From: Hamiltosporidium tvaerminnensis FI-OER-3-3
Lineage: Eukaryota > Fungi > Microsporidia
DNA: 64,000 nucleotides
Direction: 5' to 3'
NCBI GenBank assembly: GCA_022605425.2
Contig: CM061249.1
Span: 434,001-498,000 of the forward strand
The notes beneath the pieces are model-generated. The model had not been told where the DNA came from. It saw only the letters and a program-made list of their open reading frames with translations, and searched no databases. How positions within the stretch are numbered: the stretch's first letter is position 1; each line of letters begins with the position of its first letter. This document shows, piece after piece, positions 1 to 57,179 of this stretch. The position numbers and the translations under genes were made by a program.

Positions 1-109
1 GGAGTGTTGGGATAGGGGTTATTTATGCTAAACCTAGAACTGCGTTAATGTCATAAAAACAAATATAACACTTGCCACTATTCTAAAAGATCTGATACTT
101 CTAAATAAA
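1..109 (+). mobile_element. 3' tail of long 5S-headed SINE-like repeat (copy A, cut by window edge)
   Basis: GGAGTGTTGGG..GTTATTTATGCTAAACCTAGAACTGCGTTAATGTCAT..AAAAGATCTGATAC aligns with the 3' ends of the copies at 28794-29500, 37862-38570 and 38908-39627 (-). Confidence 0.8.
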
Positions 110-11837: not shown

Positions 11838-12288
11838 TATATACTTGCTCTATCTATTTAAATATGAATTAATATTCTACTTTTTTCTTAGTGAATCGCT
11901 TTCTTAATGTTTATATAGATCGAATGATTATTCGGTAGCTTCTTCTATTCTTATTCTTCGTATAGATTCTTATTAAATACTATCTTTACCTATAAGTATT
12001 ACCAAATTCTGTTCATATTTATTAGTCATTTTATTTACTGTTAAGCTTATCTTTTTTTCATATATTTTTTTTCTATTCGATAAATTTGGTCTTATTTAAA
12101 TTAATTAAAATTTTAATTAAATTCCTTCTTTATCGTAAACTTATCGATTAAAAGTGTAATATCAAAGAAATATAGAAGATAAAAATCCGAACATATTATA
12201 TAAAATCTTTATGTATTATTTATAAAATATAAAAACTGATTTTAATTTAATTTAGATAATTATATAAGTGCAAATATTTTTTAGAGAA

Positions 12289-28793: not shown

Positions 28794-29500
28794 GTGGAAG
28801 AAAGATAACCATATAAAAAACTTTCTGCTTGGCAATAGTATGTGGACTTGGTGTGAAGATCATTTTTTAAATTTTTGGTAGGAAATGACCACACTACATC
28901 TTCGGTTGTTCCATGAGGGTTTGTATAAAAATAAGAAGGCCTACGACAAGGGTGAAGCTTTTCTACAATGCATTTGTAGTTTTTTATGTAACTAGATGCA
29001 GAACGTAGCTGAAAATGTTGGTGATTGCCATGTAAAAGCAGGGAAACCTAGTCTTTCTCACTCGGTTTAGAAGACTTAGCACCTGTGAAAATTATAAAAC
29101 CCTTTAAAACCGGGAAAGCTAAGTAGCAGGTTATGCCTGTTGGTATGAGATTATAATGTATAGTTGAATCCCTTTAAGTCTTCAAGATATATCTTGGTAT
29201 GATGTTTATTGGGTTCGAAAAGGTTGGAGTAAGTGGAAAAGCTGCAAGTCTTGGGGAGCCCAAGGAGGGCTTCGATCACACATCATGCAACGGAAATTAA
29301 CGAACTCCAGGCAACTGCCTTGCCAGTAATTAACTTCTATACACCTGGTAGATAAAAGGCTTTGAGATGTAAGTATCGCAGGTGTTACCGATGGAGTTTT
29401 GGGGTAGCAGTTATTTTATGTTAAATCTAGAACTACGTTAATGTCATGAAAACAAATATAACCCTTGCTACTGTTTTAAAAAGATGTGATATTTTTAATT
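28794..29500 (+). mobile_element. Long (~710 bp) 5S-headed SINE-like repeat (copy B)
   Basis: Non-coding and collinear with 37862-38570 and 38908-39627 (-). Head GTGGA..TTCCAT spans 28794-28914 (121 nt). Confidence 0.8.
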
Positions 29501-29569
29501 AATTTTAATCCTTTAATATACTAAATTAATATTTTGATTGCTAATCGTAACTAAATAACTCCGCGGTGC

Positions 29570-30513
29570 TATACCCTTTATAGAGCTCTTAGCTGATTTC
29601 CCACCATCCTTCCTTATTATGTTCTAAATTTTTACATTACGATACATTAGGGTTTCTTAGATTCTTCATCAGATCATATATGGTCTTTTCCGTAGTCTAT
29701 CTCGTCTTTTTTTACTTTCAGGTACAGATCTAAAAATTTTTCTAGCAGCATTTTATTACGAAATTTTTTCTCGTGCCGGTGTCTCTTTTGTATTTTTTGT
29801 CTTTTTTGTTTCCATACGGATATTAAATTAGTTCCTTGATAGAGATCATATATTTCTTGATTCTACCTAATTCTTTACTCGGTATTTTAAAATATTTACT
29901 CATAACATTCTTAGTATATTTTTTTCTCATGTATTCAACAAAGATTCTTCTCTTTGGTAATTACCGATGTTTCGAAAGTATGCAGTATCTTAGTTTCAAA
30001 ACAGTTCTATATATCTGCTTTTCTTGTATTGCGATTTATCAGATTTGACTTCAGTAAGCATTGAGAAGCAAAATACGCACTCTTGCCTACGTTTATTCGT
30101 TTTATAACTAAAATTTTCTTTATTATTGCATTTAAGAGTGTTCCAGATATTAAAAGTCTTATAATTTTTCAAATTTATATGCATCGATTTTTAAAGAATT
30201 TCCAGGGTGGTCGTATAACAGAGAAATTACCATATATTTGTCTTGCATATAATTATATTCCACTAGGGATATCGGATTCTGCTGCTAATATTTATAAGAG
30301 GAATTCTATGTCTTTTTGCTTTCTCACTACGATATCCAGGCTATCTACGTATGCTTCGTATTGTATAATCTCATTGATTATTGTACCACCGGCTATTCTT
30401 TCCTCTATTGTTAGATTGAATAATACACAAGATAACGTATTCTTTTGTCTTGCCTCCATATTGCAGGCTATGGTCACTAGATATATTAACTGTAACAATA
30501 CATTTATCTTCAC
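29570..30513 (-). pseudogene. Fragmented putative secreted protein
   Basis: Signal-peptide-like start (KINVLLQLIYLVTIAC) on a GTG codon. The reading continues through stops and frameshifts into the 29996-30184 ORF. The 3' boundary is approximate. Confidence 0.35.
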
Positions 30514-33500
30514 CCAGTTTTATTTGAATTAGACAAATAATAAATAAATATTGCCGGCCCTGGATTACAATTTTTCATGTGAATCAAATTCTTATCACCA
30601 CAATTATTTAAGTTCATTTAAGGAAGCTATTTAAGTAAATCATAACATCTAGTAGTCATTAAAATAGTCATAGTATAAGCCTTGAAACTCTACTGCTTTT
30701 ACCAAGTAAATTTAAAAATATATATTAGAAAAGACTAAATCTATTCAAGTTTTTCTATTTTGGAATAATTAATGAAACGTTTACAGTAGAATTGATGTAA
30801 TAAATGAAGGCACCAAAAATCACAGAAAAAAAATAATCTGATTTGCAGTATAATATAGAAAGGAAATTCTATTTTAACATTTTAAAATCTACTTGAAAAA
30901 AACTTAAAAAATCATTAATTATTCTATTGATATAAAATAAATCTTGAAAATTAGAATCAATAAAATATTGGGTAACGAATAAATGCCTATTCAATTATTT
31001 ATAAGAAATTATACGTTTTGTTAACTATTTTGGAATTTAAGATATAAAAATTAGAAATATGTGAAAAATAAACGGATATAAGAAAGGTGATCATTATTTT
31101 TTTGCTATAACACGATATTTAGATGTCCAAAACATATATTAAATATATCTAATCAAATTTAAACTATAATTTGTCTTTTTTTTCGATAAAAAAGATAAAA
31201 AAATAATCTATGGAAGAAAGAAATCAAGGTGCTACATATCGACACATTTTATTTAGTATTTTTTAGTATATAGTATCATTCTGTCCTTTCATAATTTAAA
31301 AACCCTCTTAAACCGAAGCATGCATAATATTTTTATCGAGAAAAAATCATTTATAAAAATATCTTATTGTGTGTGTTGATAATATTATTTCTGGGAGAAA
31401 TTTCGAGAAAGAGATATTCGTCAAAGATATTAAAACCCAGGGGTAAGATAATTTTTATGTTGTGTTGCCAAAATTTACAAATCCTATTTTATGAATTGCT
31501 TTCGTACCAAAAAATTTTAAGGTGGGAAAACTTTAAAAAGTAATTTAGTTAAAATTAAATCGCGAAAATTTATATAACTAACATAGAACACCAGAAATAG
31601 GAACCTTTGGCATGAGTCATACATAAACCTTTCGCCCGAAAAAAGAACCTTTTGCTGCGAATTTTTCTGTACTATATTATCTGAAAATATGTTGTATCAA
31701 AGTGGAATTCCATATCACTGGCAAGACACATGCTGAATTATATTCATCAGTACTTTCATTTTTTTACATTAATACATTTATCTCAGAAAAATTCACAAAA
31801 AAAAACATATAAGAGAGAATATATACAAGCCATTGCAAATATTTTCCAACAATGCAAAATAACGAGCATTTTATTTTGAATTCTGAAATATTAGTCTATA
31901 ATTTTTTCAAGAACTTTCATTGACTTATCTCTTTCCATTTGATTTCCCTAAGTGACAAAGTTTTATTCCATATAGCACCGAATCAAAAATCAATCCTTAG
32001 CGTTTGAAAATCATCATAATTTAACTAAAAAAACCTTCAATCGAGTTTATTTACATATGCTGTGTTTGAATATAAAATAATTTTTAATTTTCGTAGAATT
32101 CTTTGACATAGATATATAATTTAGAAAATTTATTTATCAATGACTAAAAATATGCCAATCTTTTCTAATAAAATAACTTGATCAGGTTTCTTAAGAATTC
32201 AAGTTCTGCAATGATTTTTTTAGTGCGAAAACCATTTGCGTGCATTCGGATTAAAGCTGGTTAAAATTCTGAATTTGACTTTAATTTTCTTTTGCAAACT
32301 TTTAGCTTTACATTTAATTCATATGCGCTCGTGATAAAATCAAAAAATAATTGGTTTATTAGCAAATTTATGGCTTATTATGAATCCATTCTTAAATAAT
32401 CTTTTGCATTAGTAAAAAAAATCTAATATTTTATAAACACTAAGCGAAACGTTAAAGACTTTTCAGTAATTACTTATCAGACATTGTTATGAATGTGTAA
32501 CTAAAATACAAGAGAGTTACTAAGTCAATAAGTTTGCCGTTATTTGTTTGTTTAAAGTTCACGCAGATATTTATTTTAACTATTTTTATAAAAAATCATT
32601 CTAATTTTAAAATAAAACAAGACCGGTATTTATGTAAATAAACTAGTGGTATGTTAGGCAAATAACCATAGAATCGAATGCCTGGAATTTTGAGTAAATT
32701 AGTGGAAACCTTCATCAGTCTTCCCTGCTACTACCAGATTTATCAGTCGTACCTAAACGATTTTTTATAGATTCATTTCTTTTTAGGAGATGTATTTACA
32801 ATTGCATTCCAAATATTCATTCCCTTTGGTAGTTAGTTGCCAATGGTGTTAAAGTAATCCTTTTTTCTTCGATATTATTTCCAATCTAGTAAGAAATTAA
32901 AAGCGCAGTACGAACGACTCGCACATGTGAAATATATAATAAGATATGCTATAAGATTCCGTAAGAATTAAATGCATTTTTTGATGTCTAATTAACATAT
33001 TTTTCGATTTTTCACTTTTTGAATTTCGCTTTGTTTCTAAATATTCATATATTTAGTTATTTTAAGAATCTTTGCATTTCTTTCAAACACTTAAACGGCA
33101 AAAATATGCATTTTAGCGGTGTTTCTGTCATATATTTATCAAGAAGAAATATTTATTAATATGTTTGAATTGTTTTTGAGGCAAAAAAAATCTCTAAAAC
33201 GTGCAATATCAAGAGCGATTGATAAACTTTATAAAAGCTTGCCGTATTTCCTATTTTTTTAATACTCGAAAAATAGATTGTTTTTCTTCGTTCTATCATT
33301 TTTTAATTGGGACTTAAGCTTTTTTTCTAAGGACGTCATTTTGACATTTCGCGTTCCAATATTCTAAAATATCATTTACTAAATACTTTTTTGGCTTTTT
33401 TGATCTTTTCATTCACTTTGGTTTTTCAGATTTGAACCCCTGCTTTATTTTATTTATAAATTTTGATGTTTCTATTTCCATTAGCCATATTTAGGGCAAC

Positions 33501-34799
33501 CATAATAATTTTACCAAAAACTAATTAAATAGGAACTCGAAATAATAACATGCAAAACTGCTTCAAAATAATTATCTCTATTGCAAGAAAACTGCTAAAA
33601 TTCAAACAAAAATCGAAATACAAGGCAAATAGATTTATATATCTTACCCGCAGCAACTTAGAATTCTGAGGAAAAAGAACTTAAGATTAGAAAAGAAGGT
33701 TTCATTGAGGGTTTTGAAATGGCAGATATGCCCAAGCGTTTCGCATTCTTTTGCTGGTATTTAGGTTCTAAATATTTTTTGTTAGAACTTATCGAAAGTA
33801 GATATAACGTAGGCGTATGTGTAGGTAAATGTCTCGTGGACTATAAAAGCGTCATAATCATCACTAACATCGCTTTTACAACGCAAAATGTCGATGTATC
33901 GATATACATAAAATTTTTAAAGTATATAAATGTTTCACATGCCCTTGAAGTGTTCATGTTATCTTAGTATTTATTTCATAAGTTGAAACAATGATATACA
34001 TTATTTATAAAAATCTAAGTTACAAAAATTCGACACCGAATCAAGCATTTGTATATAATCTTTTAAAATTAAAGATAAAGATAAAACAAAAGTAATTCAG
34101 ACAAATTTAGAGGGGCGAAAATGTCTATTTAAAAATCATTTAACCTCAAATATAATTGTAGAAATAAACAAAGAGAATGCCATATTAAATGTTTTACTGA
34201 TTCGAAAATACCAACCTACATCTCATTCAAATGTTCGGACAGAGTTCTATGTATATATAAATATTGTAGATTTAATAAAATGCATCGAAGCATAATCTTC
34301 CCTTTAAATTAAACTTTAATATATACATCGATTTTATATAATTAAAATATTAACATTTAAAAAGTATTTTTAAACAAATTATTGGTTCGTATTTATAAAA
34401 TAACTGTATTAGTTTAAATTATTGAACAATTTTTTTCCTTTTACTTATTTTCCTCCACCAATTCCATCATTTTATATTTCACTTTCCATTCTTTTTATTC
34501 TTTTCTGTCAATTTTCAATCCATCAAATGCTTCCTATCATATCTAAAATGATGAGTTATGATGTTTTTTTCTGCTTAAAAGCATCTTAGTACTTCCCCAG
34601 TCTTTTAAAATTGGTTTAGTTGTTAATACCTTTACTTTGCTTAATAACACATATTGATGTTCTATTCATACTCTTATTGTCTTTAGTCATTTCAAAGTCT
34701 TCTTCATATTTCAAAAATTGATTAAATTACTCCTAGTAAATAATTATTGTATGAATATATCTCTATTTATACTTATTTGCAGTTTTTTAAGAACATCTT

Positions 34800-35450
34800 C
34801 TAATATTTTGTCACAATACCGTTCCAGGTCATCACATAAAGAATTATATCAACAACTTACATATATAAGATAAAAATATTTACTTAGTGGATTACAATTC
34901 CTTGTTCTTTTATTAAAACTTTTAAAGTGAATCTTGAGATGTAATTCACACCCAATATGCGTTACCTTGTTTTTATAATCTAAAATAAATATATCGGGTC
35001 TATTATATCAAATTTTGACATCAGTTTTTATCCTGGTCTCTATATTTTTTTCTAAATACTCTTAGAAAAAAAATTTTCTAATCTGATTAACTCATATTTA
35101 GATTATAGACTCAAATTCAAGTCTGTATAGAAGGAACAATTATAGTCATCTAATTACTTTTTTATTCCGTCCGGCGTAGTAATGGTTTTCTCATATTAAG
35201 TTGCAAATGCTCTACCGTTTTACCAGACTTATCGCAGAATGTAAACTTCCCGTTTATTCTTCATAATACATTTCTATCTTCAATATAGCAAACAATTCTT
35301 AGACCTACTGCTAGACATATATATTGTTATCCAGCCTAAATATGTCAACAGCACTTCCCATCTTATTATTCCTAACACCATATAACCTGGAAAGGGTTTC
35401 CATCTTTCATTTTAATTATTAGATTCGCTACTTGGATCTCTTCTGTCTTA
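34800..35450 (-). mobile_element. Old degenerate relic of an R4-like RLE retrotransposon (endonuclease region)
   Basis: TTGTCACAATACCGTTCCAGGTCATCACATAA and AAAATAAATATATCGGGTCT match 46777-46810 and 46958-46980 (YVMTW.GIVTK, NRPDIFILD, RIKTDVKI). Confidence 0.75.
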
Positions 35451-36031
35451 TTTTTATTGAACTTTTCTTAGCTTTAAGTTATAGTATCACAATAAGAAAT
35501 TACTCTATCATTTGCAGTAAAACCAATTAAGTGAGTAAATACAGCTATTTTTAATAATATTGAAATTTAATCTAGAATTTATTTACTTAAATAGTTAGAT
35601 ATGGTTACTTGATCCAATCAAGATCAAACATCAAAATTTAAAAACTATTTGGGGTTCTTCTATTTCAATTTATTATTTAATCAAGTTATATTTTTTTTTG
35701 ACACAATTGCAGTAACCTTTTTTAAAAATATCTTTAAATTATAATCATGTCAAAGGGTAAAACTCGCTTTTAAAATTTCTATTCGTTCTTACCTTTTTTT
35801 GTCTTTTTAATTCGTATTGATTTAAATAATTCGATTATATTTATTAAATATCCAGAAAAAATAGATATTTTGTTTTGAAACTGTCCCTAACTGCAAATGA
35901 ACAAACAAATAAATTTATTCATTGCTTTTGTAATCGAAAATCTTCTAAAAAAAATAAATCAAAGCTGTCTTATCTTTTTAAATAAATTAGAAAAGAAGTA
36001 TTTTAAAGAATCTGAAATTTAATTCCTAGAA

Positions 36032-37700
36032 ATGAAAATATTGGGCTTTTTGACTTTATTTTTTACTGATTTATTCAACGGTGAAATCAAATAATAAAAA
36101 ATCGAAAGAAACAAAGGAAACAGAAGTAATAAAATCAAGAAACCATATACCAGACATTGTGATTTATAATGATAAAGACTCCTCGATGTATAAAAGAGTA
36201 TTTAACCATTTATATTTGGAACGATTAGCGATTTATCTTTCTGAGATATTTAATGGTTATTTAAATGAACCTGCTATTGAGGAAAGAATATTGCCAAAGT
36301 GTAAAAATATTGCATCAGAATGTGACAAAATAACAGATAGCAAGCAGAAACATGAAGAATTTTTCGAAAAAATTGCTTCATTTTCCAGGGCGGACATTAT
36401 ACACTGCAAGAGGTTGTTTTTGGAAAAATATAAAAACGATCAAACAAGAAATCAGTTTTTTGATCAGTTATTGGAATTTTCTTCTAATAATAATTTTGTT
36501 TCGCAGACTGCTTTTTATAAAAATATAATATATTAATCTATTACTGAAGCAAAAACACATAGTAATGCGATGGACCCGAAAATAACTTTTGAAGCTGCAA
36601 TTACCGATACAAAATCTACCATATATCGTACTGTAATGAATCTGTTGCTCCAAGGTTTTAGCTGTTTAATTGGAAATTTAATCTGTTTTTTTCCAAATTT
36701 TGAAGATCTTTATAGATTTCTCTACGATAATGATAAAGATAAGCTTCAATATGAAATTGACTTATTTTCGAATACTTTGACATTTTGCCCTCTTAAATCA
36801 AAATATAGAATGAAAAGTTATGACGATTTACCGTTTCAAAAGTTAAATTCTAAGGTGATTAAAAATTCAGAGTATCTAAAAAATTGGACATTTTATAAAA
36901 AAATAAATAAATTTTCTGATATCTGTCCAGAAGAAATACTCGAAATGCCTCTTAATAGGTTTTTTTGGCTTGGGAATCAAAATATTACAAATGTATGGAA
37001 CGAAACAGGGAGAAAGGTCAATCCAGACAGCTCAAAATGTCCTATAAAAGGAATTTTTCGAAGTGATTTAGCTGATATTAACCAGATAGAAGATGCGGAC
37101 AACATAGAAAAATTGAAAAAAAAATGAGAACTTTATAAGGAGTTTTAGGACAAATAAAAATAAAATATCAAACCAAAAAAACACAACAATATATTGTATT
37201 CTGAATTTGAACAACTTCTTCGAAGAATTTGTAGAAGAAACTTTAAATATAATCAACGAGAAGATAAATACGATCAAGAAAACCAACATGAATACTGAAA
37301 AAGAAAATAGTGATAAAAATCGAGGAAAAAATGATTCGAAAAAATTAATAACCTTAACACACATTTTTATATTTAATTTGGTAAAAGATCATTTTGAAAA
37401 GCTAATTTTACTTCCGAAACACGAAATCTTTTTGCATTTTTGGAGAAAATCAAGAAACTCTTAAACATCACAAATATTGATTTCGATTTTGTAATAATAC
37501 TCAAGAATTTTACTAATCTATTAAAGGTACTGAATTTTCTAATAAAATTTATTCTGTATGTGAAATCAACGTTAAAGATAGAGAAAAAATTGCAGAATAT
37601 ATTAAAAAGATTGAAGAAAAAACTGTAGAAATCACAAGAACCAGATTTAAAGAATTTATTTGCGATTTTTTTAAAAATTATTTTGGAAATCCTTCGGATG
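36032..37700 (+). pseudogene. Fragmented lineage-specific putative secreted protein (pseudogene or indel errors)
   Basis: ATG 36032 (MKILGFLTLFF) shifts into the 36081 frame. The TAA at 36534-36536 is followed in frame by the 36570 ORF, and further shifts (one in a poly-A run) lead to the 37207 and 37440 ORFs. Confidence 0.6.
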
Positions 37701-37861
37701 TAAAAATTCCAAAGAAACAGTTCTTGGTATCATTTTTGGAGATCGGATAGTATTTAAAATAAATTGATCTTTTTTTGACTTTATCTTAATTTGTTATTCA
37801 CACTTTATAATTCTCAAATGAAAATAATAATTTTTAATATATTTATAGATCGATAAAAAGA

Positions 37862-38570
37862 GTGGAGGGAGGAAAACCACATAAAAAACTTTCTGCTTGG
37901 CAATGAGTATTGAAACTGGTGTGAGGTCATTGTTTGGGGTTTTGATGGGAATAAAACCACACTATATCTTTGGTTGTTCCATGGAACTTTGTATAAGGAG
38001 GGAGAGGTCTAAGAATTGGAGAAACTTTTTCTAAAAATTTATTTGTAGTTTTTTATGTAACCAGATTGCAGAACGCAGATGAACATGTAGGTAATTTCCA
38101 TGTAAAAGCATGGAAACCTAGCCTTGCTCACTCAGGTTAGAAGACTTAGCGCCTGTGAGATATAAAAATAAAACCCATTAAAAGCTGAGAGAGCTAAGTA
38201 GCAGGTTTTACTCTTTGATATGACATTGAACAATCTAGTCAGCTTTCATGTAAGCTTAGAGATATATTTTTGCAAGAATTTTCCTAGCTTCGGAAAATGT
38301 AGGGTAAATGAGAATGTGATATGGTATTGAGAGAGCTCGAGGTAGGCATCCGCCAAAGATAAAACTCCATGCAACGAACACTTATGTCACCAGGCTACTG
38401 CTTTCCCCGGCAATTGGGTTATAACAGCTTATAGATCTAGGGTTTTGGGATCTAGATATCGATGGAGTGATGGGTAGCAGTTATTTATTTTAAAGATAGA
38501 ACTGCGTTAATATCATAGAATCAATATACAGGTATCACTGTTTTACAAAAATGTGATGCTTTTAAATAAA
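37862..38570 (+). mobile_element. Long 5S-headed SINE-like repeat (copy C)
   Basis: Head 37862-37982 (121 nt). Conserved body blocks ATGTAAAAGCA.GGAAACCTAG, GAAGACTTAG and GCTAAGTAGCAGGTT. Ends TAAATAAA. Confidence 0.8.
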
Positions 38571-38907
38571 TTTAAACGAGATTATAGATGTTAAAATATT
38601 TTTCTTTTGTTTAGACTTATAAAAAATTTCACTTGTTGATTGTATAAGATAAAAATTAGCTTCATTTCTAAAGTAAATTCTTTCCAAAAACAATTATTTG
38701 ATGGATTATGCTCATAAATATATTTTCAGTACATAAAATTGTGCTATAAACATACTTGTTGTAGTTTCAAACTATTTAGCCAACCGAAAGATAAAATGTG
38801 TCTAAATAATACATATGAATGCGTATTTAGAGTAAATATTAACCGAATGGTCACTTTAGAATACAAATAAAATTTAATTTTATGTCTTTAAACATATATT
38901 AATATAC

Positions 38908-39627
38908 TTTATTTAAAAGTATCACATCTTTTTTAAAACCGTGGCAAGTGTTATATTTGTTTTCCTGACATTAACGCGGTTTTAGGTTTAACATAAATAA
39001 CTGCTACCCCAACACTCCATCGGTAACCCCTGCGATACCTACATCCCAAAGCCTTTTATCTACCAAGTGTGTATAACCTAATTACTAGGCGAGGCAGTTG
39101 CCCGGAGTTCGTTAATGTCTGTTGCATGGAGTGTGATCGAAAGCCGAAGCCCCCCCCTCGCCCCCGAGACTATGCAGCATTCCCACTTTACAATTTCTGA
39201 ACCCAATACACTTTTAGCTAAGAAATGTTTTAGAGACTTACATGGGGTCAACCCGACAGTGCAATGTTATACCAACAGGTATAACCTGCTACTTAGCTCT
39301 CCCGGCTTTTAATGTTTTTTATTTTTTATATCTCTTAGGCACTAAGTCTTCAAACCCGATTGAGCAAGGCTAGGTTTCCATGCTTTTACATAACAATTAC
39401 CTACATGTTCACCTGCAGTCTGCAATCTGGTTACATAAAAAACTACAAACAAATTTGTAGAAAAAGTTTCTCCATTTCTTAGCTCTCTCCGCTCATAAAA
39501 AGTTCTATGGAACAACCGAAGATTTAGTGGGGTTATAGTTTACCAAAAATCTAAACAATGATCTTCATGCCAACTTCACCACTCAGTGCCAAGCAGGAAG
39601 TTTTTTATGGGGTTATCTTCTCTCCAC
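38908..39627 (-). mobile_element. Long 5S-headed SINE-like repeat (copy D), tail-to-tail with copy C
   Basis: Reverse complement is collinear with copies B and C. Head 39627-39507 (121 nt). TATTTAAA occurs at both ends (38910-38917 and 39628-39635). Confidence 0.8.
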
Positions 39628-40257
39628 TATTTAAACATATAAACATTTATTCTAAAAAAATATAAAATATATAAGAATTCCAAGGTTTACGAAATAATTT
39701 AAACGTTTAAGCGGCTATAAAAGCAAGGAAAAAGGTGATAATATTAGGATATAAAAAAACAAGTTGAAATAAGCTTTTTAAAAAAATACATTAATATAAA
39801 TATCTATAAGTATTAATAAGATATAATCAATAAATAAAAATCCTAGAAACTATTTTTAAACATTATATGATAAAATGAGATCATCAGATAAAAATACCGC
39901 TATTAAAAACTAAAATAATTTATTTCAAGAAAATAAGAAAATAAATTTTATAGTTTTAAAATTTCACTCGAAATTTCTTTTATTAAAACCCAAAAAGAAA
40001 ATTTATTTCAAGAAAATAAGAAAATAAATTTTATACTTTAGAATTTATATCAAAATTTCAATCTTTAAAATTCTTAAAAATATACAATTTAAAACATTTT
40101 AAGTATTAAATTGTTTGCTATCAAAATCAAAACGCTTCTTTTCTTATAAAATGCATTTTGAAACATTTTACTTCAAAGAAATAACACCAAGAATAGTAAA
40201 TTTTGTTTTAAAAATGTTTTATTAAAAAATATTAAAATAAACAAAATAGCATAAACA

Positions 40258-40941: not shown

Positions 40942-41089
40942 ATGAAATGAAATTATATTTTATTTGTATTTTTGATTTAACTATTTTTCAAAGTATTTTA
41001 TTTGTATTTTTGATTTATATTTTAAAAAATTTATATCGATTATACAAAGATTTTTTATTTATATAAAAATTTTGACTTTTCAATATACT

Positions 41090-41346
41090 TTTATTCAATA
41101 AAATTCTGGGTTAAAATATTTTTACCATTTTTTTATGTTTTCTTCCACCTCTTTAACCACTGCTGTCTCTTCTTCCAAATCCGACTGTTCATTTATGTTA
41201 TTGGTCGGTTCCTCTAAAGTGGTTCCTCCTTGTGAAATAAGGGGTGCTTTATTTTTCGGTTTATAATTTTTTGCACCATCTTCCTCTCTTTTCGCTTCTT
41301 TTAAAGGAAGTTTTGGTTCCTCATGCATCTCTGATCTCATAATAAC
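41090..41346 (-). mobile_element. 5'-truncated 3' end of R4-like retrotransposon with 11-bp TSD
   Basis: Near-identical to 46352-46607. Flanked by TTCAATATACT at 41079-41089 and 41347-41357. Confidence 0.9.
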
Positions 41347-41394
41347 TTCAATATACTATAATTAATAAGTTATATTTTAAAAAGCTCTTCTTCT

Positions 41395-42772: not shown

Positions 42773-44578
42773 TTAATTCTGTAATGTGTGGTACCGTTCA
42801 AAACAGTCACCTATGTGAAGTCCTGGTTTGCGAGTGCATGTGCTGCAAATGTAACTGGTTTCATGCCTTCCACCTGGCACTTTACGATTGGAGCACACCA
42901 AGGAGTCCTTTTTCCCTTCATTTTGACGCATGATGTGTAATTTTCCGTTCAAACGTTCTTCTTTGTCTGTTGTAGACGGTCTTCCATGGGTCTTAGAACC
43001 CTCTCTATAATTTTGAGTCAATCCGTCCACAATTTCCCTTACGAATTTGAGGTGATTTATAGGTCTTTTGTTTTGACGAGTTTGGAAAATTTTATAAAGT
43101 AAATACGCGTTTACGCTAGATGCCTCCAATCCCCAGAAAAATAATTTGCGCCACCACTTCAGTGATTTCCTAAGAAAGCAATAGGATGTTGCATAGGAAT
43201 CAGCCCGATCTACGCCTTCCATGTATTTATTATAATTTACAATAATATGTGGTTTGTGTATGACTTGGATGTTGCCTCCTCGTACTCGACGATTTACCGG
43301 TTCAGTTCCCGAAACATCCCAGCTGGATAGTGCGAGGACAATTCTTTTATCTTTCCATGCTGATAATAATATATTTCCTGACCGACACGCAAACGTATTA
43401 TTTTCAGAAAATCTTGGTTTTTTTATGGAATCAGGTAGAAACTTCCTGTTACTCTGTATTGTGCCCGTAAAATTAATATTTAGCTTCAACAGTTCCTGAG
43501 CAAGTGGCAAGCTTGTGTAATACCTGTCAGTAAAAATATGGTATCCCGTACTTCCAGGATTACTATCTAGTAATTTATTGCATAATTCTAGTACAATTCT
43601 AGTGCTTACTGGAAGATCAAGTCGTATCAAATCTTCTGAGGTCAAGCTGCCATAATACGGCAAAATAGAATAAACATACCCAGTGTATGCATCTGCCATG
43701 ACATACATCCTTATTCCCCATTTGGTGGGTTTATTGGGATTGTATGTCAAGAAACTTATTTTTCCTTTGAATCCGACTACCGACTCGTCCACAGATATTT
43801 CTCGAGATGGAACAAAATGTTCCTTGAACCGCTCATCCAAGAAGTCTAAATAATCTCGCACTTTTTGAGTTCGGGCTCGAAGGCTTTTGTCGTTTGGATT
43901 ATTTTTATTTAAATGGAGCATCCAGAATATTTGCAAAAACCTTTCTCTCCTTAAGATATTACCAAAGAAAGGTTTTTTAGCATTAAAATTTTTGGTCCAA
44001 TATTCTTGGATATTTGCAAGTGTTATTGTGCCCGCATTCAACACAACTCCAAGGAAAGCCCGAAATTCCTCCACGGTAACATCGACCCACGAGTGCCACG
44101 TAGATCTTTTTGAGAGTCTTTTTTGGGTAATTTTATTTCGTGCATACCTATTTGTCTCAGTTACTATTTTTTCAATAAGTTCATCGGTGAAGAACAATTT
44201 AAAAAAATCTAGAGGTTTAGTGCAGTCAACAGGGATTTGTGGCCCTTCATTTCTAACACCAGAAATAAAATCAAACCTCTTTGGTGGATTATCTTCGATG
44301 GTAACATCCTTCCATGGCCGATTGTCTCTGGTTTCGCTTACATCCTCTTCACTGCTTGAAGTTGATGGCAACGGTAGTGTTCTACTTCTTTTATTCACTA
44401 TGATATCACTATCACTACTAAAGTCATTATCATTTTCTTCGTTTTCATTATCATCCACGAAGTTAGTGAAACTGTTTTTATCGCATTCTTCTTTATCACC
44501 AAATGAGTCCATAAAAAACTCATCATCGCTACTGTCTATCTCATTCATAATCACACCACGTGAATCTTTTTTCGACAT
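42773..44578 (-). CDS. piggyBac transposase (PGBD4-like)
   Basis: 601 aa with an acidic N-terminus, SVDES, KPTKWGIR, FTDRYYTS, YNKYMEGVDRAD, KWWRKLFF and a C-terminal Cys-rich domain. Confidence 0.95.
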   Translation of the reverse strand: MSKKDSRGVIMNEIDSSDDEFFMDSFGDKEECDKNSFTNFVDDNENEENDNDFSSDSDIIVNKRSRTLPLPSTSSSEEDVSETRDNRPWKDVTIEDNPPKRFDFISGVRNEGPQIPVDCTKPLDFFKLFFTDELIEKIVTETNRYARNKITQKRLSKRSTWHSWVDVTVEEFRAFLGVVLNAGTITLANIQEYWTKNFNAKKPFFGNILRRERFLQIFWMLHLNKNNPNDKSLRARTQKVRDYLDFLDERFKEHFVPSREISVDESVVGFKGKISFLTYNPNKPTKWGIRMYVMADAYTGYVYSILPYYGSLTSEDLIRLDLPVSTRIVLELCNKLLDSNPGSTGYHIFTDRYYTSLPLAQELLKLNINFTGTIQSNRKFLPDSIKKPRFSENNTFACRSGNILLSAWKDKRIVLALSSWDVSGTEPVNRRVRGGNIQVIHKPHIIVNYNKYMEGVDRADSYATSYCFLRKSLKWWRKLFFWGLEASSVNAYLLYKIFQTRQNKRPINHLKFVREIVDGLTQNYREGSKTHGRPSTTDKEERLNGKLHIMRQNEGKKDSLVCSNRKVPGGRHETSYICSTCTRKPGLHIGDCFERYHTLQN

Positions 44579-46170: not shown

Positions 46171-46351
46171 ATCGAGCATTTTATGGATAATTTTAATTAA
46201 AAAAATATTTTTTTTAATATCTGTTTTTATGTTAACGAATTATATTTTTCATAATCTAAAAAATATTTTTTATGTATATTTCAATTAATAGAATTTATAA
46301 ATAATTAAATATTTTAAAAAATACAATTTTAATTTATCAAATATAAATTAT

Positions 46352-49300
46352 TTTATTTAATAAAATTCTGGGTTAAAATATTTTTAACATTTTTATATGT
46401 TTTCTTCTACCTCTTTAACCACTATTTTCTCTTCTTCCAAATCCGACTCTTCATTTATGTTATTGGTCGGTTCTTCTAAAGTGGTTCCTCCTTGTGAAAT
46501 AAGGGGTGCTTTATTTTTCGGTTTATAATTTTTTGCCCCATCTTCCTCTCTTTTCGCTTCTTTTAAAGGGGGTGTTGGTTCCTCATGCATCTCTGATCTC
46601 ATAATAACACCCATTGACGCTCTCTCCCAGCTCTCTTCGGCATTTAGTCCTGACTCAAGTCCTCTTCGTCGATCAAAGGAAATTGTTTCGACTGTTTTCT
46701 TAAGTACTATAGACTGAATGTATGCCTCTACATTCATGGGTATTTCTAGTCTTTTAAGATGAGATTTATGGTATTTTGTCACAATACCGTCCCAGGTCAT
46801 CACATAAGGGATTATCTCAACACTACACTTATAAATAAGACCCAACTTATTGGCTAGCAGGTCATACTTCCTAAGTGTTTTCGTTTCAACTATTTGAAGT
46901 GAATCTTGGGAAGTGATTCCTACTTCAATGAGTGTTATCTTATTCTTCTTCTTATCTAAAATAAATATGTCGGGTCTGTTATTCCGAATTTTAACATCAG
47001 TTTTTATTCTGGTGTCCACTCTTATCTCTGCATACTCATTATCAAGAATTTCTTGAACTGAGTGACTCCTAATTCGTTTTGAAAACTTAAACTTATATCT
47101 ATTTAAGAGAAGTAAGTGTAGGCATCTAACCACTTCATTATGTCGTCTGGTGTAGTCATGGCCTAGCATTTTTTCGCATCGAGTGGCTAGATGATCTACA
47201 GTCTTACCAGATTTATTGCAATGTTGACACACACCATCTGCTCCCCAGAATACATTTCTATCCTGGATATAGCAGAACACAGCTTCATTTCGTGGCCTAA
47301 TATTTCCTCTCTTTAGCCATCTTGAAGAGTCACTAACACTTACAAGCTCATTTTTCCTTGCATTATATAACTTTGAATAGAGTTTTCGTTTTTCTATTTC
47401 GTTATATAGTTTTGCAAGTTGAGCTTCTTCTACCAACCTGTACTTTACTTTTAAGAAGCCTTTTATTAGTGCAAGGTGGGTTTTATTATTATTCTCAATC
47501 TTGAGGATTGCTGCTCGTCTAGTTGATGTTTCTTTACTTTTTTCCAGACAATCCAAGAGTTGCAGAAGCATATGTTCGCTTCGCAACTCAACACTATGTA
47601 GGCCTCTTCCAAGTTCTGTTCTAGGAAGGTATAAACGCTCTTTACATCCTGGGCGGAGATGTATCTTATTCTTTACCAACACCGCATGACCTGCATCATC
47701 TATCTTAGAGAAGTCAGCCGGTTCAAGTCGAAGTACTCCTATGTGATAGTTGATTTACGATATCGCATGTTGATTAATTGCAGAAAATAAATTTTTTGCG
47801 TTTAATCTAGTGTGACAAAGTCTTTCAACTCTTGATATAAGTTTGCTCTGTACTTCTTCAAATGAGCTACATGTTGGGATTCCTCTGCCATCTTCTATTA
47901 TTCCTAAATATTTGTAAACACTAACACCTTCTAGAAGAGTAGCAGTATCTTCACAACGTGTATCATTTGTGGCTGACTTCTCTTTGTTAATCTCTAAGCC
48001 AATTTCCTCTAAAAATACCTTAGCCTCGCCTGTCATAGCACTCAATGTCGAACTGTCTTTAGCAAGGAGCTTTAGATCATCAATAAACAAGAATGATTAG
48101 TAGAATGAGATTCTGCATCTGTTTGTACTGTCACTTTTGTGTATTTTTCATTAAGTTTTCGGCTTAATGGATCCATACACAACACAAATAACAAAGGTGA
48201 CAGACTTTCTCCTTGTAGAATCCCTCTATCAATCTTCTTGCTCATGATTTTTTCAGGCCCTACTGATATATCAATTTTCCATTTTGATATAATTACCTTA
48301 ATAAATTTCAGGATCCAATCAGGTAAATTAAGGTTTTCAATGCATTGAGTTAAATAAGCATGATCTTTTAAATCATAAGCCTTTTTAAAATCATCCATGT
48401 TGCCTTAAGATTATTTCCATACTCTTTATTTAGGGCAATAATTAGTAAAGCCTGCTCTTTCGCTCCCTGCACACCTCTTACCGCCCCTAATTGGTTCTCT
48501 GCAAGCAACCTTCGCCTTTCCACTTCAATTTGAGCGACTTTCGTTACACACTTTGTCGTTAACTTGTAAAGGTTGGACATACAAGTAATTGGCCTGTAGT
48601 CAGAGCCTCTTCGTGGGATTCCTTTCGGTATCAAATAGGTAAGCCCGCAGTAAAACCAATCAGCTTGAGGTGTTCCTCCTAAACATATAACTTTCACAAT
48701 ATCATAAATATATTTGTGAAGAGTTGTAAGTTTCTTAATGAAAAAATTGTAAATACCATCAATTCCAGCAGCTTTCCAATTAGAGAGCCAATTAATGATA
48801 CTTACAAATTCATCAAGTGAACGAAACGTAGTCGGATGATTATCTGATACAAATGGAATCAAATAATCATCATACGTGACTGTGTCATCATTTTTGTTCC
48901 ACATTGTAGACCAAAAACTCACAATTTCATCACGGCTAACCACATGCTCGGATTCCACACGCTCAGATAACCCACGATAAAATCGACCTCGGAAAAGCTC
49001 AAACATACGATTCTCTTTTCGGAATTGCTTCCTACTTTCATGCATCGAAATTTTTTTCTCGTAAACATTCAAAGACTCATTCTTCTTAACTAAAGCCTCA
49101 GAAAGATCAGTTACACTGCTTAAGTTTAAATTAAACTCTCGCATGATTTTCTTAAGGCTCTTCGTTTAAGAGGTGGAGAGCTTTTCCTGCTTACGAGCCT
49201 TCTCGAGAAGATCTTTGGAAAGTACTAACTTAGAAATTTTACTTTCTATGTTTTCCTTCCAAGCGGATCTAGGCTTTTCTTTGCGTGTTGCCTCGTCATA

Positions 49301-50236: not shown

Positions 50237-50362
50237 TTAGATATTAGATATTAGATATTAGATATTAGATATTAGATATTAGATATTAGATATTAGATAT
50301 TAGATATTAGATATTAGATATTAGATATTAGATATTAGATATTAGATATTAGATATTAGATA
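50237..50362. repeat. Perfect heptamer array (TTAGATA)18
   Basis: 126 bp, read directly. Confidence 0.97.
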
Positions 50363-50487: not shown

Positions 50488-53353
50488 CTAACATATAAAT
50501 CCTTTTTCTTCTTCAAACAGTACATGGATATATTTAAAAGTATTTATAATTTCATATTCGTAAAAAACGTTAGAATATTTTTCAAAAATATGCTTATAAA
50601 TTAAAATATAGTCATATCCTTCAAAAGAGTTATTAATAGATTTGTCTATAAAGGCATTATCAGTATCATCTCTATTGTTATTATTTCTCATTTCTTTTTC
50701 GACTTTTTCATCTACAATTTTGTCATTATCTATTTTATTATTTTTATCCTTTTTGCTTTCCAATTGCGTTTTATAACTTTCACTTGTGGCTTCCAATAAA
50801 TCCATATACATTTCATATTCATAGAAAATAACTTTTTGCCCATCAAATCTTTTACAGACAACTAAATCTTTCATTTTAACTGTTATGTCAGGATTTCTAG
50901 AAACGCTTTTTATATTTACATTTTCATAGCAAATAAAAGAATATACTGGTAAAGAATATGGACAGACAAAATAAAGTATTTCAATATTTTTTGTATTTTG
51001 GACCACAGATATATCTTTACCCAATACATTTTGGAAATCAACAGATATTTCGATTTTATTTCTTTCCGAATTCTTTATATTTTTATTCTTGTAGAAATCC
51101 AAATCTGTATTTGCTGCAAAAAAACTTTCTGTCAGTATTTTTTCGACTTCTGTTTTCATAAAAAAACTAATATCAAAAGTATTTTGATGTACCAATCCGA
51201 TATAAAGTCCTATAAAAAATGTTATATAAAGATCAACATATAAAACACCGGAGTATAACTTTTTACGTATATAATTTATACCACCCGTATTTCTGTAAGA
51301 CATTTTATTAATACTTATAGCACATAAAAGATTACAAAAAGGTATAACAGGGACAATAAACCGCATTTCTTTATGCTTTAATGCAGAATAAAATATTAAA
51401 TAAATTAAAACAGATATAGCAATATTTTGATTGGCGTTAAAATTCAAAAATAAAAATGTACCAGTAAAACCTGTTAAAACAATGAAAAACCATACGTAAC
51501 TTAGTACGTGTTGTTCGCCAAACACTTCACTTACTGACCACCTTACATTTACATTAAAAAATACAAAAGGAACAAATGTTAATTCCTTATAAAAATAACT
51601 GTCCACCAAAGCCATCAATAGTACTAATAAAAGACAACAAGGTATATTCTTTATAAATACCATGATAATACTTAATACTCTTCTACCATATCTATTATAT
51701 AAATCAAGATCTTCAGCATCTTCAAAATCATTAATCTTAGAATTTATAACAGAAACCTCTGTGTCTATTTGTCCTTTGATTTTAGATTGGCCATGTGTAT
51801 CATCAGATTTGTAAATATCTTTATTTTTTGTATCTTTGATAGATTCTTTCGTTTTATAATCATTGCTTTTGTCTTCTGGCTTATAACATTCCTTTGCATC
51901 ATTGTAAGAGATATTTTCTTCGTAATGATTATATTTATTATCTTGTTTATAATTTACTTGATTATCTGCAAGTTTGAGTTGTTCGTTATCTTTCTCAGAA
52001 TAGAAACATTCTTTGTAATTATTAAAATCAGTATTTTTTTCATTTGCAGATTTTTTTAAATTTTCATCGATTTTGGAATCTGTTTTACTACAAAAAATAT
52101 TTCTTATTTTAAAAAACGCTTCAACGAATTTATTCTTAATCATACGTATTATATAAAGACAAATACAACATACCTTCACAAGCTTCAAATAATTAACTAT
52201 GCTATGCAATTTAGAGCAAGTTACTGGATTTACATTTTCTGTTCTATCTTTTGACTGGTTGCAATCATTATTATTTGTTTCATTACATTCTAATTTTTCC
52301 AGTTGTAAATTATTAGATTCAGGAAGATTCTTTTTATTCTTTCTCATTTTATCATCTTCGATTGATGAATAATTTTTTTGGAAAACAGCAAAAAAAATAT
52401 GAACACCACTCAAAAATAAAATACTTGAACGTAAATAGAAAATAAAACACAAACACAAAAAGGAATTGTAGGTGTTTTAAATGTTTCTAGAGCATATAAA
52501 CACAATACAGCCATAAAAAGTTCAAAAGAGTTTATATGAGATCGAGGGGAATATAACCACAATCCATGTGAAAGCGCAGTAACATAGATAAGTGTATCCT
52601 CGTCTGCTTTATAAATAGTTCCGAGTTTTATTATAAGATAATCTGCCAACCCCGCGATTATTCCATTTACTATTTTAGAAACCAAATATCCATATTTACC
52701 ATACAAAGGTAAGATTGAATACTTGACTACCATTTCATCAAAAAACTGATATTTCGACTCCAATATTACCAAAACAACCAAATATAAATTATTTAGTATA
52801 TTTAGATGGCTTAAAAATCCTATAATCTGTCTTAAACCAAATCTTTCGAGATTATTATTTTGAAAATTTGTTTTCCTTATTTTTAAAACCTCTTTTTTCC
52901 CCATACATTTTAAAGCAACATCATCTTTAGGACAATTAATAATTTGATTTCTATTTTTGGTCTTTTCGTTAATAAGAAACCTACCAGAATCAGTTAATTT
53001 AAAAATACATAACACCACAGTAAAACAACATAAAAGACAAAGAAATATAAAATTCAAAAACAAAAAAATATTAAAATTATTCCGTATATAAACCAGACAA
53101 AAAAATCTAAAAACATCGCTAAATATCTTAAAAAAGTAAAGTGGTATAAAATATAAAAGAACATAATTAACCGATCTTATACCAATCATCCAATCCCATG
53201 TAAGTGTTCCTTTAGTATAAAAAATATAATTTATAGGTTCAAGATTCTGCCATATTTCATCCGGTTCAAATACTGTTTTGAGAAGAAATGAATTGTTAAG
53301 TCTGTAAAGAATAAAAAATAGAAGAAGATTGTTCTTATGGTTTTCAAAATCAT
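50488..53353 (-). CDS. GPI10: GPI mannosyltransferase III (PIG-B/Gpi10, GT22), with frameshifts near 53305 and 52460
   Basis: RLNNSFLLKTVFEPDEIWQNLEP, LTWDW..GIRS, RSHINSFE, DSYFY and HKEMRFIVPVIP. Likely ATG at 53353 with CCC 4 nt upstream. The two ORFs join by one T in a T-run. Confidence 0.8.
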
Positions 53354-55026
53354 AAAAGGGTAAAAGTAAACGCAATTAAAGTTTATTTTAATCATTTTAT
53401 AAAAAGATAAATTAAAATATATTTATAAAAATTAATTTTTTATTTTTGTGAGTATTTTATTTATAATATTTGTTTAAAATCATTTCTTTTAAATTTCATT
53501 TCATTTTCGCACTTCAAACTTCTCATATTTCTGCTCAGTGGATTTCAATTTCATTTTTTACTTTAAAATTATTTATTATTTTAAACGAGTTGCAAGTAAT
53601 TTTCTTTCACTTTCTACTCTAAATCTTCTTAAAAAACAGGATTAAATCAAGTTATAGAGTTGAAAAAAAAAGAATCAAATAGCCAATAAAATTTTACCCA
53701 AATATATTTGTCAATGTTTTATTTAAAATATTAAATTTATCTTGAGAAACTACGTAATTATGAAATCATTGAATGAAATTATAAAAAAAAATGTTTTACA
53801 AATAAATATTTTTTGCAAAGAAGATTTCACAAGACAGAAACTCATGATCAAAATTTTAATTTGGTATATTATGCCCTCCTTTTTTTACTCTTGATTCGAT
53901 GCATTATATAATTATTTAAATCTTTAATACTCTTTTTCGTTTCTTTCTGTATTTTTAATTATTTTTACCTACGAAATAAACAGTAAATATAACTCAGAAA
54001 TAATAAACACCAATAAATATAAAAGAATAATTGAAGATTTTCTTGTATCTTTAATTCATATTTCGAAGTAACTATATTACTGGTATAAATTAAATTTAAT
54101 TGTAGTAAATCAGATTATGTATATTTTATAAAAATATACGGAATATAAAATATATGAAGATTATATTTTCTAAAATTGATATGGAATGCAGGCTTTACCA
54201 TATTTTGCTATAAAAATATAGATTTATCACTTTTATTTACAAAAAAAATATTTACACACATTAAAACTACAACAATTTCAAATTATAAACTAGTATATAT
54301 TACAGTAGAAAATAGAATTACATTCAATGGATACAAATTTTTAAATATTTAGAAAAAATCGTATAACAGACGATTGCACCTTAACCAATATTTAACTAAA
54401 AAGGAGCTTTCAAAGTAAACTTAAAATATTTTTCAATTATTTTGTCGAGGCTTTTAGAATTAAAAATAATTTAATCAATTTTATATTGCATCTGTTAAAA
54501 ATACATCCCAGAAAAAGTTATCCGAATGCCTTTCATAACTTGATAGTCCTTATATATCCTACTTTGATATTAGAAAGTTCTTATTTTTTTCTAAATTAAA
54601 TAAACTTTTAGCAAAAATGTTAAGAGTTTTGATTATTTTTAACAAAAAGAATATAATTATATAGAAAATTTTATAAAAAGTTTATTTGATTTAGAAGAAA
54701 ATAAGAACTTTCTAATCAGAATGAGGAAATAAATTCTAAAAAAAACATTATAAAGAGACATAAGAGTTGTTGAGATAAATTTTTATCTTTATGATTAAAA
54801 AATATTGTAAATAGATCCAAATATAAAATGAAAATTAAAAACTGGCAGTAAAATAAATCACAAGTAGAAAGTAAAAACAATATAAGCTAATCATTTATTG
54901 AAAGAGAACCAAGTAAATATTAAATAAATAAATTTTATATGATGCTATTGGTCAGGCAGATTAAATTTTTTTAATTTTGAGCCATTTTTTTGATTTGTTA
55001 TTTGATAGCATAATACAGAATTTTAT

Positions 55027-55099
55027 GACCAGGCGGTGCAAGGATGACGCTCTTCGATTGGCACTCGATAGGTTGTAGGTTCGAATCCTGTCCTGGTCA
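55027..55099 (+). tRNA. Atypical tRNA(-like) gene, anticodon GGC (Ala), lacking G3:U70
   Basis: 73 nt. Acceptor stem GACCAGG/CCTGGTC plus A73, anticodon arm TCGA-TTGGCAC-TCGA, B-box GGTTCGAATCC, followed by a TTTTT Pol III terminator. Confidence 0.75.
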
Positions 55100-55320
55100 C
55101 TTTTTATGATTACCGTAAACTATAAATTTTTCAGTACAATGTGAATATCTCCTTTTTTATTTTAGAATTTTTATACTTTATTTACATTATAACATAGATA
55201 CTTCTAGCCAAATCTTTTATTTAAAAATTGATTCGAAAATTTACTTTTTTAGATATAAATTTCACAAGGTTTGATTAAAAATAATTTTAAGATTTTTTAT
55301 TCTACCCTACCCTTATAATT

Positions 55321-56313: not shown

Positions 56314-56516
56314 CTTATGACTTATGACTTATGACTTATGACTTATGACTTATGACTTATGACTTATGACTTATGACTTATGACTTATGACTTATGACTT
56401 ATGACTTATGACTTATGACTTATGACTTATGACTTATGACTTATGACTTATGACTTATGACTTATGACTTATGACTTATGACTTATGACTTATGACTTAT
56501 GACTTATGACTTATGA
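56314..56516. repeat. Perfect heptamer array (CTTATGA)29
   Basis: 203 bp, read directly. Confidence 0.97.
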
Positions 56517-57179
56517 AGAGAATTAAATATAATAAGTATTTTTTATAAGTGTAGCGTCGAGATAATTTCTTATTTGATTGCATTATGTAATATTTTAGCA
56601 ATATATATAATATATATTTTATGACAAATTATCATCCAATTGTAGTACAAAAAAATTAATTACATATTATTTGAAGGATAAAGAAAATCAGTATTAAGAC
56701 AATCAAATAATACAATTAAAAATAGGAAATTATGGCTTAAGAAATCAATCGTAAAGAAAATATAAACTAATCATCTATAAAAAAGCATTTTTTTTCATAA
56801 AATATAATTATAAATAGAAAGTCATGTCTCAAGAAAATATCAACGAAAAACTACAAACCAAGTCACACTTAAAACAACTATATCATCTTTACTACGTTTA
56901 CAATGCATATTTAAAAGATAATGTACCAACACGTATACCTGTGACTAAAAAAACCTATCAATAAACAGAACCTTCAAATAATTGCAATCCAATCAAATTT
57001 TAAAAACCTTTGATAAAAAAAAATGCTTAAAATAGAACAAATCATATGAAATTGAAAAATCAAATCTCCTTTTTCTTCACAATTATTCATATTAAATATC
57101 CTCCTTTTCCTTTCAACAAACCACCCCTTTATTATCTTCTAATCCTATAAATTACATCCTTCCCTACATTACCCTCCTT

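Follow-up and report, generated by a model that had tools for sequence, protein, structure and literature searches.

We examined a stretch of 64,000 nucleotides (nt) from the genome of Hamiltosporidium tvaerminnensis FI-OER-3-3, referred to here as the window (positions 434001-498000 of contig C4 in the 21.64-Mb, 17-contig assembly, with a genome average of 27% GC), and we argue that the repeats in it very probably belong to a non-coding retroposon of ~720 bp and of the non-LTR (LTR, long terminal repeat) type, represented here by three old copies of full length and by one tail. This element resembles a short interspersed nuclear element (SINE), depends on a long interspersed nuclear element (LINE) for its mobility and lacks a 5S, tRNA or 7SL head. 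A preliminary description of the same DNA had taken these repeats for a SINE3 system, in which a 121-nt head derived from 5S ribosomal RNA (rRNA) would drive transcription by RNA polymerase III (Pol III) through the rest of the element. The evidence given below upholds the retroposon part of that proposal and speaks against both the 5S origin of the head and the read-through by Pol III.

Natural copies of the element served as queries and comparison material throughout. In the window a repeat finder returned 28794-29500 and 37862-38570 as direct matches, both inverted with respect to 38908-39627, and a tail match at 1-88/109. A four-way alignment of these copies, designated A to D, showed that the homology spans the entire ~710 nt and that A, C and D end in the same terminus, TAAATAAA, so that the positions, strands and shared terminus reported earlier were confirmed. 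The window copies were also found to be clearly diverged, as had been stated, with mutual identities of 72-80%. Since B, C and D are less identical to the set of young copies from the genome (values in the list), they are older insertions. The features of these copies are as follows.

1-109, plus strand: copy A, a 3' tail cut by the window start, which aligns with the last ~110 nt of B, C and D; terminus ...CTTCTAAATAAA(GTTG)
28794-29500, plus strand: copy B, old and full-length, with 84% identity to the young set; its 3' end has decayed to TTTTTAATTAA, and a clear target site duplication (TSD) is no longer seen
28794-28914, plus strand: the 121-nt 'head' of copy B, with T6 at 28863-28868 and T5 at 28872-28876; not 5S-like
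37862-38570, plus strand: copy C, the oldest of the full-length copies, with 82% identity to the young set; terminus TTTTAAATAAA
38908-39627, minus strand: copy D, full-length, 90.5% identical to the young set; 9 extra nt (GTATATTAA) come after TAAATAAA, and 2 extra nt (TA) stand at the 5' junction
38887-38898, unstranded: 3'-side TSD of copy D, TATATGTTTAAA on the element strand, an exact 12-nt match with 39630-39641
39630-39641, unstranded: 5'-side TSD of copy D, an exact 12-nt match with 38887-38898
39437-39442, minus strand: T6 run inside copy D, on its sense strand at element position ~186-188, conserved in every old and young copy examined
28980-28985 (copy B) and 38049-38054 (copy C), plus strand: the equivalents of this T6 run

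The family extends over the whole genome, which also contains a full microsporidian small-subunit rRNA (RF02542, 1208 bits). With copy B as query, 40 full-length matches (~720 bp) lying on all contigs were scored out of 1165 first-look candidates. When the two ends were counted as patterns with <=3 mismatches, the first 40 nt occurred in 439 genome copies and a 38-nt segment of the 3' end in 569, the matches being divided equally over both strands, and the reversed patterns used as control gave no match in the genome at the same mismatch limit. These counts imply that about three quarters of the young copies are 5'-complete. The 29 young copies that were fetched are 95-99.9% identical (mean 97.4%), which indicates on sequence grounds that the family is recently active, and at 0.72 kb each the young copies amount to at least ~0.4 Mb or ~2% of the genome. 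Summed k-mer depth, obtained from two public runs of the organism (contigs, used for copy depth only), rose ~1700-fold where a young copy starts and dropped again over its last bases. As these steps fall exactly at the element edges and the flanks are unrelated from locus to locus, the repeats are not portions of larger segmental duplications, a possibility raised in the preliminary description. The element has a GC content of 42% against 27% for the genome. It contains no stop-free stretch of more than 86 codons and no conserved open reading frame (ORF) was found in it; the reading frames differ or are broken among young copies and a third-position (codon) bias is absent. The ~720-bp family is therefore non-coding, as had been claimed. 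Two young subfamilies could be told apart by their tails, one in which ...TTTTAAATAAA leads into G, GT or GTT..., and one of the TTCCAAATAAA type, which then continues up to TATTCTTTA and in which G or AG always precedes GTGGAG; the copies named in this comparison were L014, L017, L025, L030, L034 and L036, set against the remaining young copies.

Insertion signature and the candidate partner LINE

In the oriented flanks of 32 copies the 5' end is fixed at GTGGAGGGAGGATAACCAC, the 3' end takes the form ...GATGTGATA(C/T)TTTTAAATAAA, and these copies have no poly(A) tail. Exact direct repeats of 11-19 nt were noticed at 22 of the 32, where the mean for randomly re-paired flanks was 5.6 nt, with 9 nt as the 95th percentile. 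These TSDs stop 0-2 nt ahead of GTGGAG and resume 0-13 nt past AAATAAA, the 3' extension thus being variable in length, and often T-ended. In 19 of the 22 copies the 5' junction has one or two extra nt, and the last of them is a G in 10 of the 22. Two full-length copies, L011 (~1479-1500) and L021 (~2223-2245), are preceded by a 22-nt duplicate of their own 5' end (GTGGAGGGAGGATAACCACATA), a pattern expected if the reverse transcriptase (RT) jumped templates at the 5' end of the RNA. Non-LTR elements that move by target-primed reverse transcription are known to leave TSDs of variable length, to add nucleotides at the 5' junction, and to truncate or duplicate their 5' ends, and this signature in an element without any ORF identifies it as a non-autonomous non-LTR retroposon. 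The non-autonomous nature of this retroposon family and its defined 5' end are thus strongly supported, and the earlier proposal held in this respect, since hundreds of near-identical, dispersed and non-coding copies exist and the copy-number and TSD checks which it had called for were both positive.

We then considered which RT could serve the element. The genome holds 466 RT candidates belonging to several classes, namely:

L054: Ty3/gypsy, an LTR retrotransposon
L051: LINE with apurinic/apyrimidinic endonuclease (APE) and RT, terminus (TTTTA)n
L055: LINE with APE and RT, terminus poly(A)
L050: 939-aa RT class, low-copy
L049 (3095-6898, minus strand), L052, L053 and L056: LINE-A, by far the most frequent, with a ~1256-aa ORF in which RVT_1 is the only domain

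Comparison of four 10-kb loci gave a LINE-A unit of ~3.8 kb, which begins exactly at the ATG of its ORF (ATGGGTAGAAAGAAAAATG), without a 5' untranslated region (UTR), and terminates in ...TTAACCCAGAATTTTATTAAATAAA (AUUAAAUAAA, TTAAATAAA) without poly(A), between TSDs of 11-15 nt (ATGAAACCAAAAA, TTTTTAAATAATCTT, TAATAGAAAATTAA). Two LINE-A copies are 98.9% identical and many retain open frames of 1255-1300 aa; the nearest solved structure to the LINE-A RT is human L1 ORF2p (E = 5e-18), followed by R2. Like LINE-A, the element ends in T(T)AAATAAA and lacks poly(A), and the TSD ranges of the two correspond; the terminal motif was shared with LINE-A only among the LINE tails compared. In 3'-anchored alignments of the last 45 nt the z values of the element were 1.9-2.7 with LINE-A, and -0.5 and +0.65 with two other LINE tails. 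The first ~12 nt of both are alike as well (xTGG..AGRRAGA), a resemblance to which we give little weight. Judged from these shared sequence features, LINE-A is probably the driver of the element. Two further candidates were tried and rejected. A 3' hairpin shared by the element and LINE-A was dropped, as neither tail is more stable than its shuffles, and so was a LINE of the L050 type as partner, which is low-copy and whose 3' end was not reached.

Taken together, we propose that a source copy would be transcribed from the fixed start GTGGAG into an RNA which, as read from the copies, would end at or 0-13 nt past UAAAUAAA and carry no poly(A). Target-primed reverse transcription of this RNA into AT-rich sites would then yield the TSDs of 11-19 nt, the 1-2 extra 5' nucleotides and the occasional 5' truncation displayed by the copies, and the RT would most probably be borrowed from the ~3.8-kb LINE-A with its L1-like enzyme, as the common insertion signature suggests. 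A discrete RNA that begins at the first base of the element is supported indirectly, by the fixed 5' end, by the duplicated 5' ends of L011 and L021 and by the extra 5' nucleotides.

The 5' part, its transcription and alternative origins

At the Rfam gathering threshold the only match in the window was a tRNA, and at E<=10 no Rfam family of any kind matched three young copies searched with their flanks. ARAGORN likewise found no tRNA-like sequence in the copies, its only hit in the window being the tRNA-Ala at 55027. A tRNA, 7SL or small nuclear RNA head was rejected in view of these negative Rfam and ARAGORN searches, and together with the 5S results given below we conclude that the element has no 5S, tRNA or 7SL head. 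An HDV-like (hepatitis delta virus-like) ribozyme at the 5' end, as in R2 and L1Tc, was also rejected; no Rfam ribozyme matched, and by inspection alone the sole 5' pairing, GUGG/CCAC with its arms 11 nt apart, is too short for a nested double pseudoknot.

The sense strand of all copies, including the active ones, carries a T5 run at ~79, a second T5 at ~165 and a T6 at ~188, the first of which lies within the 'head'. Pol III terminates at T-runs as a general rule, and the genes of this organism conform to it, as the six 5S genes have no internal run of T4 or longer and carry T5 (in one case T7) 1-3 nt downstream, and the tRNA-Ala of the window is followed by T5. Pol III should hence stop ~83 nt into the element, which makes its transcription by this polymerase unlikely on sequence grounds and speaks against the proposed read-through into the body. 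This bears equally on the view that the element is a Pol III SINE whose head, from some other small RNA or with a degenerate type-2 promoter, has gone unrecognised. A promoter that travels with the element is indeed implied by the fixed 5' end of about three quarters of the young copies, and the T-ended 3' extensions past AAATAAA could be stops in the flank of a source copy. We nevertheless consider this view improbable, as the first 270 nt contain no A or B box and elsewhere such matches are as frequent as expected from shuffles, Rfam and ARAGORN found nothing in the copies, three internal runs of T5 or longer are conserved, and Pol III transcripts seldom reach a length of 720 nt. Transcription by RNA polymerase II (Pol II), with an internal promoter close to the start, would be more likely than by Pol III. 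The argument for such a promoter is one of analogy with LINE-A, which must likewise carry its promoter along and starts at its own first base. The excess of G before GTGGAG could be a reverse-transcribed cap; it is concentrated in the subfamily with the TTCCAAATAAA tail, and may therefore equally stem from the source copy of that subfamily.

Over its full length the sense strand is more stably folded than shuffled versions of it (z = -2.41, with 0 of 20 shuffles as stable) and the antisense strand is not (z = +0.19). Such sense-specific folding fits a structured RNA, and proves nothing on function. It would also be expected if the copies were processed pseudogenes of a structured non-coding RNA gene of the host, passively mobilised by LINE-A, and this idea gains from the GC content of 42% in a 27% GC genome, which is typical of structured RNAs. 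We hold it for unlikely all the same, to about the same degree as an unrecognised Pol III head. No Rfam family was matched, the tail-diagnostic subfamilies and the age classes (84%, 82%, 90.5% and >95%) indicate successive master copies as in families of transposable elements (TEs), and hundreds to a thousand copies would be extreme for processed pseudogenes in 21.6 Mb.

The proposal of a SINE3-type element, with a 121-nt 5S-derived head acting as a type-1 internal Pol III promoter, was examined by covariance-model search, by alignment to the organism's own 5S genes and by covariation. RF00001 detected six genuine 5S genes, located on contig C3, with 86-97 bits. The same model gave no match to the heads, either at the gathering threshold or at E<=10, in old or in young copies, and none at E<=10 on the segment 28500-39900. 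Five heads aligned to the own 5S scored like shuffles (z from -1.25 to +1.24, with 11-15 identical columns), so that the 5S-like motifs listed for the head earlier left no signal by either approach. Folded singly, the heads were not more stable than shuffles (z = +0.67, -0.39 and -0.24) and their internal folds differed from copy to copy; for copy B in particular no RF00001 match was obtained at E<=10, z was 0.22 against the own 5S and -0.39 for folding. In an alignment of eight divergent heads the consensus structure was weak (-11.7 kcal/mol), its covariation term was unfavourable (+0.94 kcal/mol) with one compensatory pair out of 32, and its shape, a closing stem with three arms, differed from the two-armed junction of 5S. 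What can be said for a 5S head is that the element is a TSD-flanked retroposon, that the length of the head is near to that of 5S, and that its ends, GUGGA(G) and UUCCA(U), pair over 5-6 bp in all copies. This helix-I-like pairing, which the preliminary description had noted, is the sole pairing that recurs, and being nearly invariant it is uninformative. The length from GTGGA to TTCCAT is exactly 121 nt in B, C and D, as described, and is not a constant of the family, since it measures 122-123 nt in young copies; similarly, the T-run reported to follow the head is present in copy D (element position 127) and missing from the other copies, including the young active ones. The 5' part of the element is not 5S-derived, and with the T5 at 79 inside the head and the T5 at 165 and T6 at 188 retained in active copies, we regard a SINE3-type origin as highly improbable. 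As a side observation, the six 5S genes (L001-L006) share a conserved ATTATAAATAC box ~20-30 nt upstream of their start, and this resemblance to a TATA box suggests that internal signals are not all that drives 5S transcription in this organism.

An internal-deletion derivative of a LINE (of the RIME/NARTc type), solo LTRs or a miniature inverted-repeat transposable element (MITE) are just as improbable; for a LINE derivative speak the first ~12 nt, which resemble the start of LINE-A, and the last 8-10 nt, which match its end, but BLAST at word size 7 found no similarity of the element to LINE or Ty3 loci save for neighbouring element copies, which excludes a deletion derivative, and LTRs or a MITE do not agree with TSDs that vary from 11 to 19 nt in place of a fixed 4-6 nt, with termini of GTGG...TAAATAAA in place of TG..CA, with the lack of terminal inverted repeats between the copy ends, or, for solo LTRs, with the lack of gag, pol or other retroviral domains between the direct copies B and C, so that the copies are not LTRs of a coding element either, as had been considered earlier.

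Several points weigh against our interpretation of the family as a LINE-A-dependent retroposon without a head of small-RNA origin. No endonuclease was found in the N-terminal ~420 aa of LINE-A in Pfam at E<=5, and a LINE without a Pfam-detectable endonuclease leaves the nicking of the target unexplained. The likeness between the element and LINE-A consists of an AT-only terminus of 8-10 nt, matching TSD lengths and missing poly(A) tails. In a genome of 27% GC a link with z of only 1.9-2.7 is suggestive, not decisive, with four LINE-A copies compared at both ends. Lastly, the element may conceivably derive from an unrecognised, fast-evolving host RNA, a matter which Rfam alone does not settle.

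Other features of the window

Besides the retroposon copies, the window contains an intact 601-aa ORF for a piggyBac-type transposase at 42773-44578 on the minus strand (DDE_Tnp_1_7, 267 bits, with a C-terminal zinc finger). Inverted repeats of 177 nt, which are 98% complementary and composed of 41/21-nt tandem subrepeats (TTGCAATCAATATAATAAT...), were noticed at 10168-10453 and 11656-11839. The ORF between them (10459-11211) encodes 250 aa with homeodomain-like helix-turn-helix (HTH) domains, and the whole unit is probably a DNA transposon; its subrepeats also adjoin insertions of the retroposon in L018 and L020. A repeated coding family, 88-98% identical, occupies 46350-47682, 60428-61757, 41088-41365 and 34798-35290. 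It has a 429-aa ORF on the minus strand without a Pfam match, and a decayed relative lies between copies B and C. An Alg9-like mannosyltransferase (Glyco_transf_22) is found at 50488-53375 on the minus strand in two overlapping ORFs, 52410-53375 and 50488-52458, and this split may reflect a frameshift, an intron or a pseudogene. The window's only tRNA gene, tRNA-Ala, lies at 55027-55100. Long perfect microsatellites with a 7-nt unit are present at 56314-56523, (CTTATGA)n, which is ~1.2 kb downstream of the tRNA gene, and at 50237-50362, (TTAGATA)n.

Known systems and significance

LINE-dependent, non-coding retroposons without a Pol III head are a known kind, and this family is a further case. 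A close parallel is provided by EhSINE1, EhSINE2 and EhSINE3 of Entamoeba histolytica, which measure 0.5-0.7 kb and are paired with EhLINE1, EhLINE2 and EhLINE3 (PMC3716655). The element described here resembles them in being non-coding, LINE-dependent and abundant, in residing in the AT-rich genome of a unicellular parasite and in its insertion into intergenic AT-rich sites. EhSINEs, too, are not known to carry a tRNA, 7SL or 5S head, and they have a longer conserved 3' stretch in common with their partner LINEs. On the other hand, the sharing between our element and LINE-A is limited to the terminal T(T)AAATAAA, the host belongs to another phylum and there is no sequence similarity. With SINE3 of zebrafish and other vertebrates the element shares its non-autonomous nature, TSDs, a LINE-type 3' end and the length of ~120 nt proposed for the head. 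The heads of SINE3 elements are recognisably 5S and retain the internal control region, unlike the head of the present element, which has no 5S signal by covariance model, own-5S alignment or covariation and contains a Pol III terminator. Short non-coding elements mobilised by LINEs in trans are further represented by Eg-R1 of Blumeria graminis (~700 bp), by RIME, NARTc and SIDER of trypanosomatids and by human SVA, which have a fixed 5' end and no known Pol III promoter. RIME and NARTc consist of the ends of their own LINE, from which our element differs as it is not built of LINE ends, and SVA and Eg-R1 carry poly(A) tails, which its copies do not.

Among Microsporidia, four families of non-LTR retrotransposons have been reported from Anncaliia algerae, all of them autonomous elements (PMC4202319). 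LINE-A, too, is a non-LTR RT element and, like these microsporidian retrotransposons, represents the kind of machinery which the element must borrow. Neither SINEs nor other non-autonomous retroposons are mentioned in the microsporidian TE surveys considered here (PMC4202319, PMC7313128), SINEs are likewise missing from earlier genome papers on this genus (PMC2784321, PMC6944219), and for one other microsporidian genome a count of zero SINEs was given (PMC11585130). The Hamiltosporidium tvaerminnensis assembly was reported to contain 39.56% repeats, 25.45% being classed as "other", with no mention of SINEs (PMC10542269). Thus, within the literature searched, as distinct from the Repbase and Dfam collections, the family is apparently undescribed for Microsporidia. 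A bolder reading, which we offer tentatively and rate at somewhat less than an even chance, is that it may be the first SINE-class retroposon described in Microsporidia, together with a matched, leaderless, single-ORF LINE. Both RNAs would start with xTGG..AGRRAGA, a purine-rich initiator, and end in UAAAUAAA without poly(A), this terminus would be recognised by the RT of the LINE, and the pair might make up a sizeable share of the 25% of unclassified repeats which swell this large microsporidian genome.

The finding adds a non-autonomous class of retroposons to those listed in the microsporidian TE surveys considered here, and points to an unusual LINE which lacks a 5' UTR, a poly(A) tail and any recognisable endonuclease. 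Large microsporidian genomes have been used to ask why some parasites escaped genome reduction, and a recently active family of ~570-1100 copies with clean TSDs puts a name to part of the unclassified repeat fraction of one of them. Furthermore, its insertions provide homoplasy-poor presence/absence markers for the population genetics of this Daphnia parasite.

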